A stretch of DNA of 64,000 nucleotides, from IMG/VR virus record IMGVR_UViG_3300035180_001778, positions 248,001-312,000 of that record, one strand, 5' to 3'. Positions within the stretch are counted from its first letter, which is position 1. Every line of letters begins with the position of its first letter. The position numbers were made by a program, and so were the translations under genes. The notes under the pieces were generated by a model, which had not been told where the DNA came from, did not search any database, and was given only the letters and a program-made list of their open reading frames with translations. This document shows, one piece after another, positions 965 through 54,233 of this stretch.

Positions 965-1525
965 TCAGCCCGAGGCCTGGTTCTGCTGGAACCCCACGAG
1001 GAAGGGTTCCCAGAGGTCCGACTTGACGTCATGCCGGATCTGGGGAGCCCCCAACGGCAGAGTCTTCGGAGCGTGCGGATGCGCGATGCCCTTCCACGTT
1101 GCCGGGGGCTTGAGCCTCATGCCCGCTTCTGCCGGCGTGCGACCAGCCTTGCGGCCGTTGCACGGGTAGCAGCTCGTCACGATGTTCTCCCACACCGTCT
1201 TCCCACCCTGGCGCCTCGGAACCACATGGTCGTAGTTCAGGTCCTTCCGCGACTTGGTGGTGCCGCAGTAGCAGCACATGAAGTTGTCGCGAGCGAAGAC
1301 GTTCTCCCGTGAGAACTTGACGCCCCGCTTGCGATACGGGACGACCTTCTTGAGCATGGCGACCGCGGGCATCTTGACGACCTGCCCATCACGCTCGCAG
1401 AGGACCTCGTCGTACTCTTCCAGGATTTGGATTTTGCCGTTGCAGAAGTCGACCATTGCGACCTGCCACGGCACGACTCTGTGTGGGGCCATCCACGAGT
1501 TCAAGATCAGCGTATGCGAGTTCAT
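965..1525 (-). CDS. HNH endonuclease (McrA-like)
   Basis: FSRENVFARDNFMCCYCG, DHVVPRRQGG, WENIVTSCYPCN. Confidence 0.9.
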   Translation of the reverse strand: MNSHTLILNSWMAPHRVVPWQVAMVDFCNGKIQILEEYDEVLCERDGQVVKMPAVAMLKKVVPYRKRGVKFSRENVFARDNFMCCYCGTTKSRKDLNYDHVVPRRQGGKTVWENIVTSCYPCNGRKAGRTPAEAGMRLKPPATWKGIAHPHAPKTLPLGAPQIRHDVKSDLWEPFLVGFQQNQASG

Positions 1526-1577
1526 GGGACACCTTCGTGATGCGCCCCAACTTGGAGCGGCTACCGTTTCAATTGCA

Positions 1578-1654
1578 TGGTGCCCGCCGGGGGATTCGAA
1601 CCCCCAACCTTCCGTTTTTGAGGCGGACGCCGCTGCCAGTTGGGCTAGACGGGC
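1578..1654 (-). tRNA. tRNA-Leu(CAA), short variable loop
   Basis: Loop CT-CAA-AA, encoded CCA. Confidence 0.85.
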
Positions 1655-1708
1655 ATAATACAGGAAGGCCCTGGTTGCGATCAACCAAGGCCTTCCAATT
1701 CGAGAATT

Positions 1709-2060
1709 TGGAGCTGCCGGGAATCGAACCCGGGTCCGCAAAGCTTCCGTTCCGCTTTCGTTTACGTGCGTAGCCGCCATATCCCTGGCGGCTGGGTTCG
1801 CGGATTTGGCCGCGAACTATCTCGTCTGCTTGTCTCGAAGGGGTAGCCGCCGAGCACGCTTCCCCTTCCAGCCCTGTGGGTTGACACCGGAAATCCAGCT
1901 ACTAGGACGATCTTGCTGGCCGATGGTCACTACGCAGCCATCTGCATGGGGACGAGAGCGTTGTCGTTCGCAGGTATACGTCTCGATTGATTACGGCGGG
2001 TCGAGAGCCGCCTACACGCAAGCTGGAACTTCCAATCCACGTCGAAACCAAGTCAGCCCC
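1709..2060 (-). ncRNA. ssrA: tmRNA
   Basis: 5' GGGGCTGACTTGGTTTCGAC, G3.U70 acceptor, 3' T arm, tag ANDNALVPMQMAA then TAG TGA. Confidence 0.95.
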
Positions 2061-8836: not shown

Positions 8837-9136
8837 CTACTTGGGGTCGAGGACGCTGTTCACGATGCGGAGCCGACCACTGGCCGATCCAACATTGTGA
8901 AGAAGCTCGGAGTTCTCAGGAGTTGTTGCCGGTCCCAAACGAATGGGCTGCAACGACTTCTTGATGTTCGTGAGCCGGATCTTCCAGCGCACATCGAAGT
9001 CTCGACCCTCGGCGAAGTAGCCGATGCTGAGCTTCACCGGGTCGTCATCCCCAAGAACAGGTTTCCCCGTCTCACGGACGTGAGACGGGGAAACCTGAAC
9101 CATCTGCAAGAAATCCTCATACTCATGGAGTGCCAT
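8837..9136 (-). CDS. hypothetical protein
   Basis: ORF in tRNA spacer. Confidence 0.4.
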   Translation of the reverse strand: MALHEYEDFLQMVQVSPSHVRETGKPVLGDDDPVKLSIGYFAEGRDFDVRWKIRLTNIKKSLQPIRLGPATTPENSELLHNVGSASGRLRIVNSVLDPK

Positions 9137-9252: not shown

Positions 9253-9325
9253 TGTGCCTGACGGGGATCGAACCCGCCTTAGTTGATTCACAGTCAACCA
9301 TCATCACCAGATGACAACAGGCACC
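9253..9325 (-). tRNA. tRNA-His(GTG)
   Basis: GTTGA-CTGTGAA-TCAAC, encoded G-1. Confidence 0.85.
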
Positions 9326-9429: not shown

Positions 9430-9568
9430 TAGAGGGGTATCTTGGAGTCGAACCAAGTACTTGTAAGAACCACTGTTTTGCCCCGTTTTTGACGGGGCGA
9501 GGTGTGGTACTGGGAGCTTTCGCTCCTGCGTGGAAGGCAGGTGAGGAACCGATCCTCTGTAATACCCC
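9430..9568 (-). ncRNA. Y-like RNA 5: tRNA body (TCC loop) with about 65-nt module in the variable arm
   Basis: Full cloverleaf plus ACCAC-ACCTC-stem-GTGGT-TCTTACA module. Confidence 0.75.
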
Positions 9569-9576
9569 GAGATTTA

Positions 9577-9696
9577 AGGCGTCCGAGGTGCGGCCCTGGG
9601 ACTGTGCAAGAGCGAGTTTCGAATTCGCCCCATCGGTGCTAAACCGATTGCCCACCAAGGACAATCTTGCGTGTAAGAGCCGCGAATTGAACGCCT
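9577..9696 (-). ncRNA. Y-like RNA 4: module forms the ends, tRNA domain joined via acceptor stem
   Basis: AGGCGTTC/GGACGCCT and GCGGCTC/GGGCCGC stems, ACCTC and CTTACA motifs, internal D/anticodon/T arms. Confidence 0.7.
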
Positions 9697-9829
9697 AGTG
9701 CCAAACCGTGGAGTCGAACCACGCTTGCTTGTATGAGCCTCAGTTTTCCTCCACATGGGAGGAGAGAAGAGACACAGGGGATTTTGGTTTCCTTATGTGG
9801 GAAGTGGCCGCCCCGCGGCCTTGTTTGGC
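9696..9829 (-). ncRNA. Y-like RNA 3: tRNA body (CAT loop) with module in the variable arm
   Basis: Acceptor GCCAAAC/GTTTGGC; GTCTC-TTCTCTC-stem-GAGGC-TCATACA. Confidence 0.7.
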
Positions 9830-9862
9830 GTTTGCCGGCCCATGCCGGTCTTGAAAGATTTC

Positions 9863-10003
9863 CCCGTTCCCGAGAGAAGAGACCTGGATTTCTGATCGTT
9901 TTTCGGACGATTGCCTTACCGATAGGCTACAGACCCAGTTGTTGGCGGGTTTGGCAAGAGTTGAACTTGCTTGCGTGTAAGGTCTCGTTCGAGAGGGAAC
10001 GAG
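9863..10003 (-). ncRNA. Y-like RNA 2: circularly permuted tRNA (YrlA-type order)
   Basis: Terminal stem, T arm, acceptor 3' strand with GCCA, loop, acceptor 5' strand, D arm, anticodon arm, terminal stem. Confidence 0.8.
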
Positions 10004-10141
10004 TAGTGGGCCACCCTGGAGTCGAACCAGTGACTTGTAAGAACAACTATTTGTCCAGTTCACACGGGACGAGGTGTTGTACTGAGGAGCTTGCGCTCCC
10101 GCTCCGATTGCGGGTGGGGGACCGACCCCCTGTGATGGCAC
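10004..10141 (-). ncRNA. Y-like RNA 1: tRNA body with module in the variable arm
   Basis: Paralog of 9430-9568 with compensatory change ACAAC/GTTGT vs ACCAC/GTGGT. Confidence 0.75.
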
Positions 10142-10226
10142 AGATGACCGTTTGAGACGGTCTCGTTTCGCTTCTATCTAGTACACCATCTCTCCGAGTT
10201 ACGAGATGGTTTTTTCAGATTTCTCT

Positions 10227-10805
10227 CTAGAGGTGCAATGTAGTGCCGTACGGCGCGACGTTGTACCCGATCTTGCGCCCCTTGAGGAAGAACTCCTGGA
10301 CGGCACGAGCGAGATAGGCTGAGGTGAGGGCGATAAACGGCAAGTGCTCGCCGTTTTCGCAGGTTGCTGCCCCAGCTCCGGGCTCATCGTCGATGGTGAA
10401 GTCGTGATCCCACCGAACGAGTCCGAAGGTGCCGTCTGCCGCCAGTCCCCCGTGGATGCAGGGAGTGTTGGTCCGACGAGCGAAAGCTTGCACAAGCCGG
10501 CGTGCTGCCCCGTTGTCGAGGCAGTCGACGATGAGGTCGGCTCCCGAGAGGAGCTGCTTCTCATTGTCGGACGTGAGCTTGTGCGGGATGGTCTCGATCT
10601 TCGTCCCGAAGAAGAAGTTCATCGCCTGCTTCAGCGACTCGACCTTGGCCTTGCCCACGGAAGGCTTCCCGTGGAACTGGCTGAGTACGTTCTTCTGCTC
10701 GACGCGGTCGAAGTCGATCACCTTGAGGTTCACCCCGGTGCTCCGGAGGAACTGTGCAACGTGGGAGCCGAGCGCGCCGACCCCCACAATGGTCACGGTC
10801 TTCAT
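10227..10805 (-). CDS. ThiF/E1-like adenylyltransferase
   Basis: GVGALGS, IDFDRVE, DCLDN..AR, candidate catalytic Cys in ATCE. Confidence 0.9.
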   Translation of the reverse strand: MKTVTIVGVGALGSHVAQFLRSTGVNLKVIDFDRVEQKNVLSQFHGKPSVGKAKVESLKQAMNFFFGTKIETIPHKLTSDNEKQLLSGADLIVDCLDNGAARRLVQAFARRTNTPCIHGGLAADGTFGLVRWDHDFTIDDEPGAGAATCENGEHLPFIALTSAYLARAVQEFFLKGRKIGYNVAPYGTTLHL

Positions 10806-11185
10806 AGTGTTGCTCCGAAGCCGATCCAGTCCCCAAACAACCCCTGCTCGCGGACTGTGCGGACGGTTTCTGCGAACTTGAGCCACGCCTCCCAGGGCAT
10901 GTCCCTCCGCATATAGTTACACCTGATGCAGGCCGGAACGACGTTCGCCTTCGTGTGACCAAGAGCGTTATCCACGCGATCCAGGGTCATCTTGAGCTTG
11001 GTCTCGCCGCAGTACTGGCACCCCAAAGCGAGGAGGTCTTGGACGAAAGAGAGATCGAGATCCGAGATGAACCCGTGCCTCTTGTCCCTCTTCTTGGAGT
11101 CCTCCAAGACCCAACGGGAGCGTGTTGTGGGGTCTCTCCGAAGAGCTTTCCGGCGATCTTCCCGGACGCGCCAGTTATCAGGCAT
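10802..11185 (-). CDS. HNH endonuclease inserted in the operon
   Basis: CQYCG, LDRVDNALGHTKANVVPACIRCN. Confidence 0.85.
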   Translation of the reverse strand: MPDNWRVREDRRKALRRDPTTRSRWVLEDSKKRDKRHGFISDLDLSFVQDLLALGCQYCGETKLKMTLDRVDNALGHTKANVVPACIRCNYMRRDMPWEAWLKFAETVRTVREQGLFGDWIGFGATL

Positions 11186-11224
11186 GATCCGTGGAGGTTA
11201 CCACAGATCCGCCCCTGCTGACAA

Positions 11225-11515
11225 TCACTTCGTCAGCGGTCGCTGAGACCAGATAACAACAACGGCAACCGTCTTCTGGAAGGGCTTGCCATCAGCATCG
11301 AGATCAGATTCCTGCCCCACATGCACGAGCTTTCCACTGTGCGTGGTCAGATAGTGGTTGACGTGATCCTGCCACTGATTTGGCCCGGTGAAGCGATAGT
11401 GGTTGACGTGATCCTGCCACTGATTTGGCCCGGTGAAGCTGAAGTCCCACCCACATGTACAGCTTCCGCCGAGCACGTCGCTGTCGATACGAACGACTTC
11501 CTGAATCTTACCCAT
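11225..11515 (-). CDS. hypothetical protein with in-frame 15-aa duplication
   Basis: ORF; FTGPNQWQDHVNHY occurs twice. Confidence 0.55.
   Translation of the reverse strand: MGKIQEVVRIDSDVLGGSCTCGWDFSFTGPNQWQDHVNHYRFTGPNQWQDHVNHYLTTHSGKLVHVGQESDLDADGKPFQKTVAVVVIWSQRPLTK
11350..11439. repeat. perfect 45-bp tandem duplication
   Basis: gatagtggttg...gtgaagc x2. Confidence 0.95.
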
Positions 11516-11522
11516 GGCTGCC

Positions 11523-11789
11523 TCAGTCGACGTCTCCGAAGGGGGTCTTCGGCCGGACGCTGATCCGGTTGTGGAGGTCCCCCGTGGCCGGGAAGCGGTC
11601 GATGACGAAGTCGGTGAAGTCGGCGTTCCCCATCGCGGGGATCCCGGGGACGCCGCCGTTGCGGATGGCCTCGGTCACCCAGGCGCGAATCTGGGTGTCG
11701 GTCGAGTCGTACAGGACCGTATCCGGGAGGTCCCCCTGGTTGCCGGAGTAGGTGATGTTGACTCGGGCCTCTTGTGCTGCGATGACCAT
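11523..11789 (-). CDS. ubiquitin-like protein (putative)
   Basis: 88 aa, beta-grasp-compatible pattern, ends RPKTPFG-DVD, between JAB and ThiF, AGGAG RBS. Confidence 0.65.
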   Translation of the reverse strand: MVIAAQEARVNITYSGNQGDLPDTVLYDSTDTQIRAWVTEAIRNGGVPGIPAMGNADFTDFVIDRFPATGDLHNRISVRPKTPFGDVD

Positions 11790-11836
11790 GGCTGGTCTCC
11801 TTTCATTCGATGTTGGGGGTCTAGTACACCGGACCC

Positions 11837-12244
11837 TCAAGACGGGGTTGGAAACCCGGAGCGAATCCTCAGCTCACGGACCCAAGGGATCAGAGGAACC
11901 TCTGAGAGCAGGTCCACACAGGCCAAGCTCACAGTGTATCTGGGGGCTTGGTGCTCCTTTTCCCGGAGACACAAGACCAGCGAATCCCCCGAAGAGATCC
12001 ACCATTCGAGATGCCGACCCAATCCACGTTCAATCGCGTCGAACGTGGTGATATCCTCACGGCTCGGACCCAGCTTCCCGTATCCGGGGTGGGTGTGAGC
12101 TATGCCCCGGAGCCGAGCGCGGTTCTCCCAGATCACATCCCAGAGGGGACGGCTATCCGGGATAGCTCCGCCAGAACGGTCGTTCGGCATGTGCCAGTAG
12201 AAGGGTTGACCGTCGAGGTCAAGGAGAACGGCTGCTTCCTTCAT
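11837..12244 (-). CDS. JAB/MPN metalloprotease
   Basis: N-terminal Glu and HTHP-x6-S-x2-D (HxH..S..D) motif. Confidence 0.9.
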   Translation of the reverse strand: MKEAAVLLDLDGQPFYWHMPNDRSGGAIPDSRPLWDVIWENRARLRGIAHTHPGYGKLGPSREDITTFDAIERGLGRHLEWWISSGDSLVLCLREKEHQAPRYTVSLACVDLLSEVPLIPWVRELRIRSGFPTPS

Positions 12245-12246
12245 GG

Positions 12247-12432
12247 TCAACCCTTGCAGGACTTCTTGTGCTTGTACCAGACGAAGGCCGCGTCGCCGAT
12301 CCCGGCTTGCGCTGCCCACTGCTTGAGCGACAGGCCTTGAGGGAGACCTTCAGCTCGCCAGCGACGCTTCAGATCGTTGCGCCACTTGCGACACACACCG
12401 TTCTCGTATCCCTCTTGGCTAGTCGTCGTCAT
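12247..12432 (-). CDS. small basic hypothetical protein
   Basis: Fills operon gap; start uncertain. Confidence 0.4.
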   Translation of the reverse strand: MTTTSQEGYENGVCRKWRNDLKRRWRAEGLPQGLSLKQWAAQAGIGDAAFVWYKHKKSCKG

Positions 12433-13390
12433 CATCGTCGTCCCTATCGTCCCCAACGTGTCGGAAGACCACGAGCTTCCGCTCACGGTCCGCTTGTCCG
12501 ATTACACCAGGCAGCGATTCGAGGGTGAAGTATGCATCGCCTTTCTCCCCCGTTGCATGGTCGTTGAGGCAAATCCCGGAATCGATGATCCGAAGCGTAC
12601 GGGCATCGCACGTACACTCGAACTGCCGGTGCATGAACCGGAAGGTGACGACCATTTCTCCGCGAGACGTGGATGTTCTGTGGTCGAGGTAGGTCGCACC
12701 ACCTACCGCCAGGGAGGCCCGAGCAGCCTCGCCGAAGTCCACCACAGCCATTGCCCGCCGACCGGCTGCATCTCCGAGCTGAGTACGAATCTGCTCTCGG
12801 CGTTCCTCAAGCTGACGTCGTTCTTCTTCCTCGCGGAGCTGCTTGGCGATCTCTTCGCGGCGCTTTTGGGCTTCGAGTGTCCGCCACATTTCCATGCGGA
12901 AGGCAGCATCGAGAGCCGGAGCCACACCCTTCACCGCATCGAGTGAAGGGGTGCGGTTGTAGTAAGCCTGGAGAACGTCTCCCTCGGGACCGAGGGGCAT
13001 CTCTTGTCCCCCGTAGATGAGGGGCCCATCTTCGTAGAAGGCTCCGACCTGGACACGGGCGAACCGATCCAGGCCGGGCTCCACAAGATGTACGGGCTTT
13101 GCGTAGTCGCAGATCCTCGCCGGGTCCGGGTCGACACGGACATTGTCCGGAACGATCCAGTCTCCGACGAGATACCCGCGAACCTGTTGTCGAAGGAGCC
13201 CAGCGGTGGCTTCCGCCGGGCCTTTGAGCTTGGCCTTCCGTCCAGTCAAACCGAACGTGTACCACCCATGCTCCCTCGGAAGAGGGCCATCGAGAGTCCA
13301 CGATCGTTCAGCTTGACGAAGGACCCTACCCCCGATCCAAGGAAGGACGATCGTCTCGTCCTTCCCCTGGAGAAGATCCTTCCAGCCCAT
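12419..13390 (-). CDS. coiled-coil protein with C-terminal E2-like domain (putative)
   Basis: IIDSGICL...TLESLPGVI resembles the UBC active-site region; operon context. Confidence 0.5.
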   Translation of the reverse strand: MGWKDLLQGKDETIVLPWIGGRVLRQAERSWTLDGPLPREHGWYTFGLTGRKAKLKGPAEATAGLLRQQVRGYLVGDWIVPDNVRVDPDPARICDYAKPVHLVEPGLDRFARVQVGAFYEDGPLIYGGQEMPLGPEGDVLQAYYNRTPSLDAVKGVAPALDAAFRMEMWRTLEAQKRREEIAKQLREEEERRQLEERREQIRTQLGDAAGRRAMAVVDFGEAARASLAVGGATYLDHRTSTSRGEMVVTFRFMHRQFECTCDARTLRIIDSGICLNDHATGEKGDAYFTLESLPGVIGQADRERKLVVFRHVGDDRDDDDDDD

Positions 13391-13395
13391 TCAGC

Positions 13396-15285
13396 TCACG
13401 CAGCCCATGCCGGCTTCACCAAGAGCGGGGTCTTGATGATGGTGTCGACGAGGGTCACACGAGGAGCAGCGTTCACGACACCCGCCGTCTTGCCGACCGG
13501 AGTCGACGCCACGAGGGCCGCGAGCATCCGAGGAATCGCGTAGGGATCCGCGAATACCTTCGGGTCGATATCGAAGCAGGGGATACCCAGCCGAACGGCC
13601 GTATCCCTGACGATGCTGCCGTTGTCCTTCACCTTGACGAGGCCGAATGCCGACGGGTTGCCGATGTAGCGAACCATCGGTTCGAAGGTGCCATGCTCCC
13701 CCTCGTCTCCGACGAAGATGAAGAGAGCATCCTCACCCGGCTTGGGCTTGTGAGCCGAGAGGCTCATGATGCCCGCCGAGTGAGAGGTTCCACCTCCCGC
13801 CATGATGCCGCGGAAGGCGTTCGTCACTCCAGCCGCCGAAGCGTGCTGGATCTTGATCTCGCGACCCGCGGTGTTGAAGACCGCGACGTGCAGGCGATCC
13901 AGGGGGAATGCCTGGAGGAACTTCGCGAGGAGGTCCTTGGCAGCCTCGATCGCGCCCTCCATCGAGCCCGAGATGTCCACGAAGACGTAGATGCGCTGGT
14001 CCTTGAGGGACACTTCCACCGCCTTCTGCAAGGCGACGTCAGCGACCTGAACCAGGGCTTCCTTGACCTCCCGGGACTTCACCCGGGTGGCGATGTTGGC
14101 GGCCCGCATGTCGAGAGCACCCTTGCCGGCCCGCTCCCACCGCTCGCGGATGTCCTGTACATTGAGAAGACCGAGGTCTTCCAGCGTCGGAGTCGCGATG
14201 ATGAGGTCCTTGTCGGACATGGCGCCCGCTTCGATGGCCGAAGCGACGATGGCCCTCGTGAGGCCGACCGAGCTGGGGACCATCCCGACGATGCGCTTCC
14301 AGTTCTGCTTCTCCTTCGAGATGCGCTGGCAGATGGTCGCCTCGTCGAGGCCCTCCCACGAATCCGCCGCCTTGACCTCCAGGCCGATGGCCACCGTGCG
14401 ACGGCCATCCTTTGCCTGAGCCTGCTTCCAGCGGAGGAGCTGGAAGAACTGGGGCGTCACCGGCTTGTAGCCGGTGAACTTGACGAGCTTCGCGACGGTC
14501 GTCTTGAAGCCGTTGGAGATGAGGCCCGCGAAGACCTTCGGGTTCTCCTCACGGTAGCGGAGCCACTTGGTGACCACCGACGTCCACCGACCGAGGAACG
14601 GCCGGCGAGCCGACTTGCCGAAGCCCAGCTCGCGGTTGATGTCCGCGATGCCCGGGACCGTCAGGAGCGTGTGTATACGGACGAGCTGCTTCGCATCGAG
14701 GTCAGGCTTGTCCTTCACACCCTTCACCGGCTTGGTCGAGATGAGCATCATCGCCTCGCCGATGTCCCTGAAGTCGTCGTCGAAGAAGGCGACCTTCCCC
14801 GCGTCGAGGACCGGGTCTCCCTTGCGGGACTGGACGAGCATGAAGGCCGCCATGACGACCTTGAAGTCACGGTGACCCTGCGTGAACGCGTAGGATGCCC
14901 AGTGGGCCGCGAACTCGTTGTCGAGCTTCCAGACCTCGGCGACCTGTCGGTACAGGTAGACCGCGACCTCGGGGAAGATCCCCGGTGCCCGATACTCGCC
15001 GACGATCCGGCCCGCTGCGTCCTTGACCTGGTTGGTATCGGTCATGACCCCGAGCAGGGTCCGCACGTTCTTGGTGCCGTTCTTGGAGAGCGCGTAGACG
15101 TTCTTGACCGTCTGATCGCTGTCCTTGACCTTCTCGACCTTGTGGGTGACGAAGACCCACTTGACGCCGAGCGGCGAGGAGGGGTCCTTCGAGACCATGC
15201 CAGGGCGACCGTGAAAGACGTGATCGACGAATGCGAGGCTGGCCGCGATGATTCGCTCTGCCGGGCCGAGGTTGCTTTGTTCCAC
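13396..15285 (-). CDS. TROVE/Ro60-like helical protein with C-terminal vWA domain
   Basis: MIDAS VDISGSM, GGGTS, VGDEGE; long helical N-terminus with LDNEFAAHWASYA; start uncertain (up to 15348). Confidence 0.7.
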   Translation of the reverse strand: MEQSNLGPAERIIAASLAFVDHVFHGRPGMVSKDPSSPLGVKWVFVTHKVEKVKDSDQTVKNVYALSKNGTKNVRTLLGVMTDTNQVKDAAGRIVGEYRAPGIFPEVAVYLYRQVAEVWKLDNEFAAHWASYAFTQGHRDFKVVMAAFMLVQSRKGDPVLDAGKVAFFDDDFRDIGEAMMLISTKPVKGVKDKPDLDAKQLVRIHTLLTVPGIADINRELGFGKSARRPFLGRWTSVVTKWLRYREENPKVFAGLISNGFKTTVAKLVKFTGYKPVTPQFFQLLRWKQAQAKDGRRTVAIGLEVKAADSWEGLDEATICQRISKEKQNWKRIVGMVPSSVGLTRAIVASAIEAGAMSDKDLIIATPTLEDLGLLNVQDIRERWERAGKGALDMRAANIATRVKSREVKEALVQVADVALQKAVEVSLKDQRIYVFVDISGSMEGAIEAAKDLLAKFLQAFPLDRLHVAVFNTAGREIKIQHASAAGVTNAFRGIMAGGGTSHSAGIMSLSAHKPKPGEDALFIFVGDEGEHGTFEPMVRYIGNPSAFGLVKVKDNGSIVRDTAVRLGIPCFDIDPKVFADPYAIPRMLAALVASTPVGKTAGVVNAAPRVTLVDTIIKTPLLVKPAWAA

Positions 15286-15417
15286 AGCGATTCCATCCCA
15301 GCTCTCGCAGAAGAGCTGCATTGTGCGTGTGCAGTGCCGAAGGAACACGAGGAGTCCCCGAGCTTCTGCGAGCTGGAGACTCCGTGTGCTGGAAGGGCGT
15401 GCCTTCCTTGTCCTTCT

Positions 15418-54160: not shown

Positions 54161-54233
54161 GCTCCCGTAGCTCAATTGGCTGAGCAGCGGATTTCAAATC
54201 TGTTGTATAGGGGTTCGAGTCCCCTCGGGAGCA
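54161..54233 (+). tRNA. opal suppressor tRNA (anticodon TCA)
   Basis: GCGGA-TTTCAAA-TCTGT, 7-bp acceptor, short variable loop, own promoter 54122-54149. Confidence 0.85.

Follow-up and report, generated by a model that had tools for sequence, protein, structure and literature searches.

Ro60 and its Y RNAs are conserved from bacteria to humans, and the regulation of these ribonucleoprotein particles (RNPs) is poorly understood. Y RNAs bind to the outer surface of Ro60, and the ends of misfolded RNAs are taken up by its central hole. Conjugation of ubiquitin-like proteins (Ubls) in bacteria has, to our knowledge, so far been tied to anti-phage defence. Some jumbo phages are known to encode TROVE proteins, and the Ubl pathways Bil, Bub and CBASS have been described. 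YrlA RNAs adjoin Ro60 in over 250 bacteria and phages; they are tRNA mimics in which the T-arm, an acceptor stem-loop and the D-arm follow each other in this order (Chen et al. 2014, PMC4201824); the published Ro-binding motif of YrlA is GNCGAAN0-1G on the 5' strand (PMC4201824). Proteins with a vWA domain have been described together with complete prokaryotic Ubl cascades, as in vWA-MoxR ternary systems (PMC7159879). Here, we describe a locus in which a Ro60-like vWA protein, a Ubl cassette and a set of tRNA-like RNAs are found side by side. It lies in a stretch of 64,000 nucleotides (nt) from the IMG/VR virus record IMGVR_UViG_3300035180_001778 (positions 248,001 to 312,000 of that record; hereafter the window).

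The genes form a single minus-strand block, which runs from 15348 to 10227 and encodes the vWA protein, a protein of 323 residues (p323), a JAB protease, the Ubl, an open reading frame (ORF) of 96 residues, an HNH endonuclease and an E1; five tRNA-like RNAs follow in series, the first one 87 nt past the E1 stop codon. We consider it fairly probable that the locus encodes an RNP of the Ro60/Y-RNA type, coupled to a minimal cassette for Ubl activation or conjugation. Except for a possible mention in Burroughs & Aravind 2016 (on RNA repair systems), the literature searches yielded no description of a TROVE or Ro-like protein joined to Ubl, E1 and JAB, nor of the RNA topologies described below; no paper was found that joins TROVE with a Ubl cascade, as had been presumed in a preliminary description of this DNA.

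The operon and its distribution

The block comprises the following genes:

13396-15348, minus strand: Ro60-like vWA protein, 650 residues (start likely near 15321), with a predicted N-terminal beta domain, a TROVE-like alpha-solenoid and a vWA domain with an intact metal ion-dependent adhesion site (MIDAS)
12419-13390, minus strand: p323, 323 residues, possibly a non-canonical E2 or an adaptor; C259 and C274 are invariant; AlphaFold2 (AF2) model with a predicted local distance difference test score (pLDDT) of 87.8
11837-12319, minus strand: JAB/JAMM metallopeptidase, the conserved part of which begins at M26, at about 12244
11523-11789, minus strand: Ubl, 88 residues, with the C-terminus ...RPKTPFG and then DVD
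11225-11515, minus strand: p96, a small ORF outside the conserved set
10802-11185, minus strand: HNH endonuclease, encoded by a mobile insert in the Ubl-E1 interval (PHROG endonuclease VII/HNH, 4.8e-12)
10227-10808, minus strand: minimal E1, an adenylating enzyme of the ThiF/MoeB type of ~193 residues (Pfam ThiF, 6.7e-28)

The family of the Ro-like protein has more than 1,536 matches at about 60% identity, mostly on contigs of 200-660 kb, and the related phage contigs span 235-363 kb. The gene neighbourhood was surveyed in 49 viral loci, the count being limited to non-redundant loci with enough downstream sequence. The p323 gene directly follows the Ro-like gene in all 49 of them, JAB and Ubl are each present in 48/49 and E1 in 43/49; wherever the set is complete, the order Ro-like, p323, JAB, Ubl, E1 is colinear (43/43). 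A scan with one genome per species yielded 218 further relatives. Those at 36-43% identity reside on chromosomes of cultured Myxococcota (Cystobacter fuscus, Archangium spp., Citreicoccus and Vitiosangium) and in metagenome-assembled genomes (MAGs) of Verrucomicrobiota and Terriglobales. Among 40 chromosomal-type loci, p323 is found within 8 kb in 36, JAB in 36, Ubl in 29 and E1 in 26, and synteny within this distance is kept in 25 loci. The operon of Cystobacter is flanked by ordinary chromosomal genes (a phytochrome kinase, a GH31 glycosidase and ATP-grasp enzymes). Since the operon is kept at chromosomal loci, the system is not phage-specific. Relatives at 50-59% identity (L067-L094) are located on phage-like contigs binned to MAGs of Myxococcota (Kofleriaceae, Polyangiaceae and Sandaracinaceae); these are probably mis-binned contigs of huge phages, which hints at Myxococcota as the hosts.

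The layout largely agrees with the preliminary description, which had placed the run of vWA protein, Cys-bearing protein, JAB, Ubl and ThiF-type E1 correctly but omitted p96 and the HNH gene. The five structured tRNA-like RNAs with their shared module do begin within 90 nt of the E1 gene, tRNA scans reveal tRNA arrays on both sides, and the genes form a conserved unit in the neighbourhood survey. The notion of a phage-specific system had to be abandoned in view of the bacterial chromosomes.

When all seven ORFs were searched with Pfam, NCBIfam, PADLOC and PHROGs, vWA, ThiF, a weak JAB and HNH were recognised and nothing else. Two of the ORFs are inserts and not parts of the system because they are absent from nearly all related loci: p96 was seen only in two contigs identical to the window and is missing from almost all related loci, and the HNH gene of the window is either variable in position or absent in other loci. 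p96 holds a direct tandem duplication of a segment of ~15 residues (FTGPNQWQDHVNHY twice). HNH endonuclease genes occur at differing positions in and around the operon and the tRNA arrays of various phages, including 965-1780 (minus strand) of the window; this scatter suggests homing-type insertions that split the operon but leave it intact as a set. A group I intron or ribozyme within the inserts was rejected, as Rfam gave no match there at E<=10.

The Ro60-like protein, p323 and the Ubl cassette

An AF2 model of the vWA protein, computed on 42 homologues (pLDDT 82, predicted template modelling score (pTM) 0.52), displays a beta-rich segment at residues ~50-120, an all-helical region from 126 to 447 and then the vWA domain. 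The long helical N-terminus that had been expected is thus present as the region 126-447, but the N-terminal part is not purely helical, as the beta-rich segment precedes it. In a Foldseek search against the PDB, the best matches are all Ro60/TROVE structures (9kop, 3.5e-8; Xenopus Ro 1yvp, 3.5e-7; Ro60 of Thermus phage phiLo, 2.2e-6), with 510-560 aligned columns and ranked above plain vWA domains. The best matches in BFVD, in a structure search of the Foldseek type, are viral TROVE and DUF2828+vWA proteins, and the language-model neighbours of the protein (Atlas features) include TROVE/vWA_Ro60 clusters. The MIDAS residues D458, S460, S462, T521 and D548 are invariant among the homologues. 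By its best structural matches, the protein appears to be Ro60/TROVE-like in predicted fold, consisting of an alpha-solenoid followed by a vWA domain with MIDAS; at this level, the Ro60/TROVE assignment of the preliminary description is supported.

Alternatively, the vWA protein could merely serve as a protein-protein adaptor of a Ubl conflict system, in which case the RNAs would bind p323 or act on their own and the likeness to Ro60 would be superficial. For such a role, vWA proteins with complete Ubl cascades provide a precedent (PMC7159879), a TROVE signal is lacking at the sequence level and the template modelling scores (TM-scores) are low; PDB sequence and profile searches with the vWA protein returned no Ro60 match, the profiles detecting the vWA domain only. 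The N-domain of p323 furthermore has a weak, non-significant likeness to OB/S1-type folds. What makes this explanation improbable is that full-length TROVE+vWA proteins account for all best structural matches in both PDB and BFVD, ahead of plain vWA domains, that the RNA beside the gene has the build of YrlA, and that no MoxR ATPase is present.

The Ubl of the window has no Pfam match and no PDB sequence or profile match. The Atlas model of the nearest Ubl cluster, which stands in for the Ubl of the window, resembles PB1, a beta-grasp fold, with a TM-score of 0.55. In an alignment of 39 Ubl sequences, F84 and G85 are invariant and are followed by 0-4 residues in most cases. JAB scores under the cut-off of the Pfam Prok-JAB model (16.6 vs 25), and E28, H75-x-H77, S86 and D89, a full JAMM motif, are >=90% conserved in 53 sequences. 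The E1 reaches 97.9 bits with the Pfam ThiF profile, far above the cut-off of 28.1; its GxGxxG and D95-C-L-D-N motifs and the loop cysteine Cys150 are conserved in 44 sequences. The PADLOC models of E1-E2 and Bil/CBASS-type systems matched the E1 part only, and no E2, Ubl or deubiquitylase model was matched.

The presence of JAB is linked to the C-terminus of the Ubl, which stops at Gly in 10/13 loci that lack JAB vs 10/96 loci that carry it (Fisher p 9e-7). The link between a missing JAB and a Ubl that stops at Gly gives direct comparative support for maturation of the Ubl by JAB and for the terminal Gly as its reactive end; JAB is apparently needed only where the Ubl has residues beyond this Gly. 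An operon variant without JAB (Ro-like, p323, Ubl, E1), in which the Ubl gene ends exactly after the codon of the terminal Gly, is found in L068, L069, L072, L073, L077, L087-L089, L092 and L094.

The same three proteins could instead constitute a sulfur carrier system. Known Ubls that form thiocarboxylates are ThiS, MoaD, CysO, QbsE and TtuB. By analogy, Ubl, E1 and JAB would generate a Ubl-thiocarboxylate for the thiolation of tRNAs or of the tRNA-like RNAs, p323 with its two invariant cysteines would act as a sulfur relay and the Ro-like protein as an RNA scaffold. Among named proteins, the E1 is matched best by ThiF/MoeB adenylyltransferases. No relation of p323 to E2s could be detected, and the phage operon resides in a tRNA island; JAB, Ubl and E1 without recognisable E2 and E3 are typical of such sets. 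The Ubl terminus, however, is an invariant Phe-Gly, as opposed to the Gly-Gly of known carriers, the operon has no conserved gene for a rhodanese, a cysteine desulfurase or a PP-loop thiolase, and the chromosomal versions are found outside tRNA contexts. We therefore regard a sulfur carrier as unlikely.

According to its AF2 model, p323 begins with a beta-rich N-domain, continues with a helix of ~50 residues and ends in an alpha/beta4/loop/alpha domain. Two cysteines, Cys259 and Cys274, are invariant across 42 homologues, the latter within the motif IIDxGIC-L. The order of elements in the C-terminal domain (helix, four strands, loop with Cys274, helix) and the GIC-L motif recall the active site of E2s; the HPN-type motif of UBC-fold E2s, in which the catalytic Cys comes after the beta-meander, is absent. 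By Foldseek, the N-domain is weakly, and not significantly, similar to RNA-binding folds of the OB/S1 type. The E2-like label given to this protein in the preliminary description is unproven: it draws on the GxIC-L motif and the strand order, and Foldseek, Pfam and PDB profiles found nothing. p323 may be a non-canonical E2 or an adaptor, the resemblance to E2s being a lead and not a proof.

The tRNA-like RNAs

The five RNAs adopt three topologies, types A, B and D. Covariance models were built from other loci for type B (R1) and type A (R2); both match the window at the RNA block only. The block consists of:

10008-10140, minus strand: RNA1, type A (R2 model, 86.3 bits; minimum free energy (MFE) fold)
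9860-10005, minus strand: RNA2, type B (R1 model, 110.6 bits; MFE z-score -4.0)
9700-9830, minus strand: RNA3, type A (R2 model, 74.4 bits; MFE fold)
9579-9696, minus strand: RNA4, type D (MFE fold; weak R1 match, 26 bits)
9433-9569, minus strand: RNA5, type A (R2 model, 94.4 bits; MFE z-score -5.7)
9253-9324, minus strand: ordinary tRNA-His (GUG), which closes the RNA block (Rfam tRNA, 50.8 bits; missed by ARAGORN)

A module is common to all five RNAs, with two nearly invariant motifs, CUCG on the strand that leaves the tRNA-like body and UACA[A/C]G[C/U] just ahead of the re-entry. It is made up of two covarying helices around an internal loop with ACUCG, with UACA[A/C]GC at the base, and the same two motifs are invariant in the alignments of types A and B. 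The types differ in how the module is joined to the tRNA-like body: (i) type A has an open acceptor stem of 6-7 bp, D-like and anticodon-like hairpins and a T-arm, the module being closed by a hairpin at the position of the variable arm; RNA1 also possesses an extra GNRA hairpin and a CCA-like 3' end, and CCA is encoded after the discriminator in about a third of the type A relatives; (ii) type B (RNA2) is circularly permuted, the T-arm being followed by a loop-closed acceptor stem (with an internal GCCA in the window), the D-arm and the anticodon arm, and the ends of the RNA form the module; (iii) type D (RNA4) has a cloverleaf-like core of three hairpins, in which the module replaces the acceptor stem. 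Relatives of type D elsewhere score as 'tRNA 5-66/71'.

The single-sequence folds of the five RNAs are as expected, with z-scores from -1.9 to -5.7. RNAalifold recovered all six helices from 16 type B sequences, with compensatory changes in 33/36 pairs. For 86 distinct type B sequences from phages and bacteria, 93.2% of the cells are paired, compared with 62.1% after shuffling and 32-43% with slid partners, and double changes are seen in 35/37 pairs; in type A, 24/26 pairs covary. The anticodon-like loop of type B measures 7 nt in 73/87 sequences and carries Y32, U33 (77%), R37 and A38 around 35 different triplets. Type B thus keeps the shape of a tRNA, while its anticodon triplet is unconstrained and the module is invariant.

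The RNAs are closely tied to the operon, as the preliminary description had proposed. Across 57 viral loci, the motif UACANGN followed by a T-arm occurs 133 times on the operon strand vs once on the opposite strand; 98 copies are located up to 3 kb past E1, another 17 precede the Ro-like gene by at most 1.5 kb, and 36/41 loci have the motif at a flank. By the preliminary description's own standard, a lack of tRNA-like RNAs near homologous operons would have spoken against the proposal, but this check did not refute it. The operons on bacterial chromosomes, where tRNA arrays are absent, likewise carry the RNA beside the Ro-like gene: the type B model scores 66-107 bits in 26/52 of these loci, always on the operon strand. 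In 24/26, no more than 1.1 kb separates the RNA from the Ro-like gene, and 2-6 copies are often arranged in tandem. Bacterial chromosomes contain one to six permuted YrlA-like copies; huge phages contain arrays of up to about eight RNAs in three topologies, type A being essentially confined to phages. A blastn search of the RNA block against phage records gave no match.

A possible relation to YrlA rests on architecture, since the permuted RNA2 follows the YrlA order. The Rfam YrlA model (RF02553) gives 19 bits on RNA2, for which the partial tRNA match amounts to 27.5 bits. The highest YrlA score at any locus, 42.6 bits over the full length (E 4e-6), was obtained immediately upstream of the Ro-like gene of one bacterial locus, and partial matches of 28-34 bits are seen elsewhere. 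In the internal loop of the RNAs, the conserved letters are CCA in the 5' strand and ACUCG in the 3' strand, the latter resembling the AcUuG of the Rfam YrlA consensus.

In principle, the RNAs might be decayed, intron-bearing or permuted phage tRNA genes that are found near the operon by chance. They do lie between two tRNA arrays and possess T-arms and, in part, CCA-like ends, and dimeric tRNAs yield weak false matches to the type B model. Against this stand the invariant module next to an unconstrained anticodon triplet and the confinement of the model matches, within the window, to the block. Moreover, bacterial chromosomes without tRNA arrays carry the RNA next to their Ro-like gene, and the non-tRNA module is conserved and covaries across phyla; a chance origin is effectively excluded, and we consider it highly improbable. 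A relative of tmRNA was also rejected for the RNAs, a separate tmRNA being present at 1709-2060.

Some type B RNAs (L037:13857-14024, L026:14712-14888, L010:2852-3013 and L023:2411-2574) have an acceptor stem of 7 bp with ACCA after it, and their closing loop contains an additional hairpin; in this they resemble a permuted tRNA gene or the YrlA of M. smegmatis, which is cleaved by RNase P and receives CCA (PMC4201824). A full bacterial class-A RNase P RNA (RF00010, 299.5 bits) is located within the tRNA array of a related phage (L040:16035-16399, plus strand); a phage-encoded RNase P RNA would bear on the processing of the tRNA-like RNAs. A strict TTGAC...GTGTA pattern is found downstream of E1 in only 7/41 loci, and an own promoter of the RNA array is suggested for some loci.

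The surroundings of the block are a tRNA island of the huge-phage type, with 38 tRNA calls and one tmRNA in the tRNA and Rfam scans. Just beyond the RNA block, a near-perfect inverted repeat of ~22 bp (9054-9101), which causes spurious matches to microRNA precursors on both strands, is situated within a small ORF (8837-9136); it could be a terminator or a protein-binding site. The sole tRNA on the plus strand, at 54161-54233 and far from the arrays, has the anticodon UCA (Rfam tRNA, 64.7 bits; labelled SeC by ARAGORN) and may be a UGA suppressor, hinting at stop-codon recoding in part of the phage.

Proposed function and relation to known systems

A Ro60/Y-RNA-type RNP coupled to a Ubl cassette could operate in the following manner: The shared RNA module would dock on the Ro-like ring in the same manner in which Y RNAs use their conserved helix to bind Ro60. 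The tRNA-shaped part, with a canonical Y32-U33-NNN-R37-A38 loop and a free triplet, would then be displayed to factors that read the shape of tRNAs. JAB would expose Gly85 of the Ubl, which would be adenylated by the E1 and probably transferred to Cys150 as a thioester. p323, always encoded right after the Ro-like protein, may receive or direct the Ubl, Cys274 being the candidate residue. As a result, a component or client of the RNP could be tagged, or the RNP itself could be switched. In the phage, the most plausible use of the enlarged RNA set would be to survey RNAs or tRNAs, or to provide decoys, in the course of infection.

Two bolder versions of this scheme can be envisaged: the Ubl cascade may be RNA-guided, the RNAs on the ring picking a tRNA-binding protein and the hypervariable 'anticodon' providing specificity, or the Ubl may be moved onto RNA, for example onto the CCA-like 3' end of type A, in a way comparable to aminoacylation. 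Either would be the first case in which ubiquitin-like chemistry is programmed by a non-coding RNA or takes place on one; we hold them to be improbable.

Several observations weigh against the coupling of a Ro60-type RNP to a Ubl cassette. At the sequence level, the vWA protein has no match to Pfam TROVE (PF05731) at E<=0.1 in the case of the window and at E<=1 in that of the family (0/42 members). Its TM-scores to Ro60 are low (0.29-0.38), as is the pTM of the model, so that a closed ring is not demonstrated; for this reason, the protein is termed Ro60-like in fold and not a proven ring. The p323 model found no significant match in the PDB by Foldseek (best E 0.29), and searches of Pfam, PADLOC and PDB sequences and profiles returned no relative. 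From 1.84 billion representatives, the p323 profile recovered its own family only (541 representatives), and hence there is no bridge from p323 to E2s. A RING-type E3 was not detected, and neither an E3 nor a tagging target was identified. As to the RNAs, the Rfam YrlA gathering score (69 bits) is never reached, the eight phage loci included, and GNCGAAN0-1G is not present as such on the 5' strand; in view of the low scores and the differing motif, the RNAs are considered a new, distant YrlA-like family and not members of YrlA. No sigma-70 promoter was called in the window. The sole 'RNA' run with part of the stretch contains contigs of 19-30 kb, which are probably DNA and therefore say nothing about transcripts or RNA ends. 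Finally, the surveillance or decoy role of the RNA set in phages is purely conjectural.

If the coupling of Ro-like RNP and Ubl holds, the widespread and tightly conserved operon would give direct experimental access to the control of an RNA-surveillance particle or to the marking of its clients. With carriers among culturable Myxococcota (Cystobacter, Archangium and Citreicoccus), the system is testable now. The RNAs represent a new family of tRNA mimics, in which one putative protein-docking module is combined with tRNA bodies in three topologies. The expansion of this set inside the tRNA islands of huge phages bears on how phages protect or manipulate translation.

Among the described systems, Ro60/YrlA shares with this locus a gene for a ring-type, TROVE+vWA-like protein with adjacent small RNAs, in several copies per locus and in bacteria as well as phages. 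The order of T-arm, closed acceptor stem-loop and D-arm is that of type B (RNA2 and 86 relatives), and in both cases the two ends of the RNA pair into a stem that has a conserved internal loop. In contrast to Ro60, the protein here has no TROVE profile match and an extra N-terminal beta domain, and its locus always contains Ubl, E1 and p323 and usually JAB, without a link to RtcB/RtcA or PNPase; near the operon in the window, no RNA ligase, kinase or PNPase was seen. In contrast to YrlA, the RNAs add a true anticodon arm, their motifs are ACUCG and UACAAGC instead of GNCGAAN0-1G, and the stem is placed at the variable-arm position (type B), at the acceptor position (type D) or is closed as a long variable arm on an open body (type A).

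The sulfur-carrier sets (CysO/Mec+, QbsE/QbsD and TtuB/TtuC) share the minimal E1, a Ubl extension trimmed by JAB and a link to tRNA (TtuB/Urm1). Apart from the Phe-Gly terminus and the missing sulfurtransferase or thiolase partner, they are set apart from the locus by its extra conserved Ro-like protein and p323. Atg8-type Ubls end in Phe-Gly plus a short extension, which a protease removes before the E1 acts, and are served by a non-canonical E2 without HPN. The Ubl described here is similar to them in its Phe-Gly and short extension, and the class of the protease differs.

Bil, Bub and CBASS Cap2/Cap3 are likewise organised as operons and occur in conflict-prone genomes; like the locus, they combine a JAB with a small Ubl that has a C-terminal Gly and with an E1 of the ThiF type that possesses a loop Cys. 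Unlike in these pathways, neither a recognisable E2 nor a RING-type E3 accompanies the cassette; its partner is a predicted RNA-binding ring protein with cognate RNAs and not a CD-NTase or a phage-tail target, and the operon occurs in phages and not only in cells.

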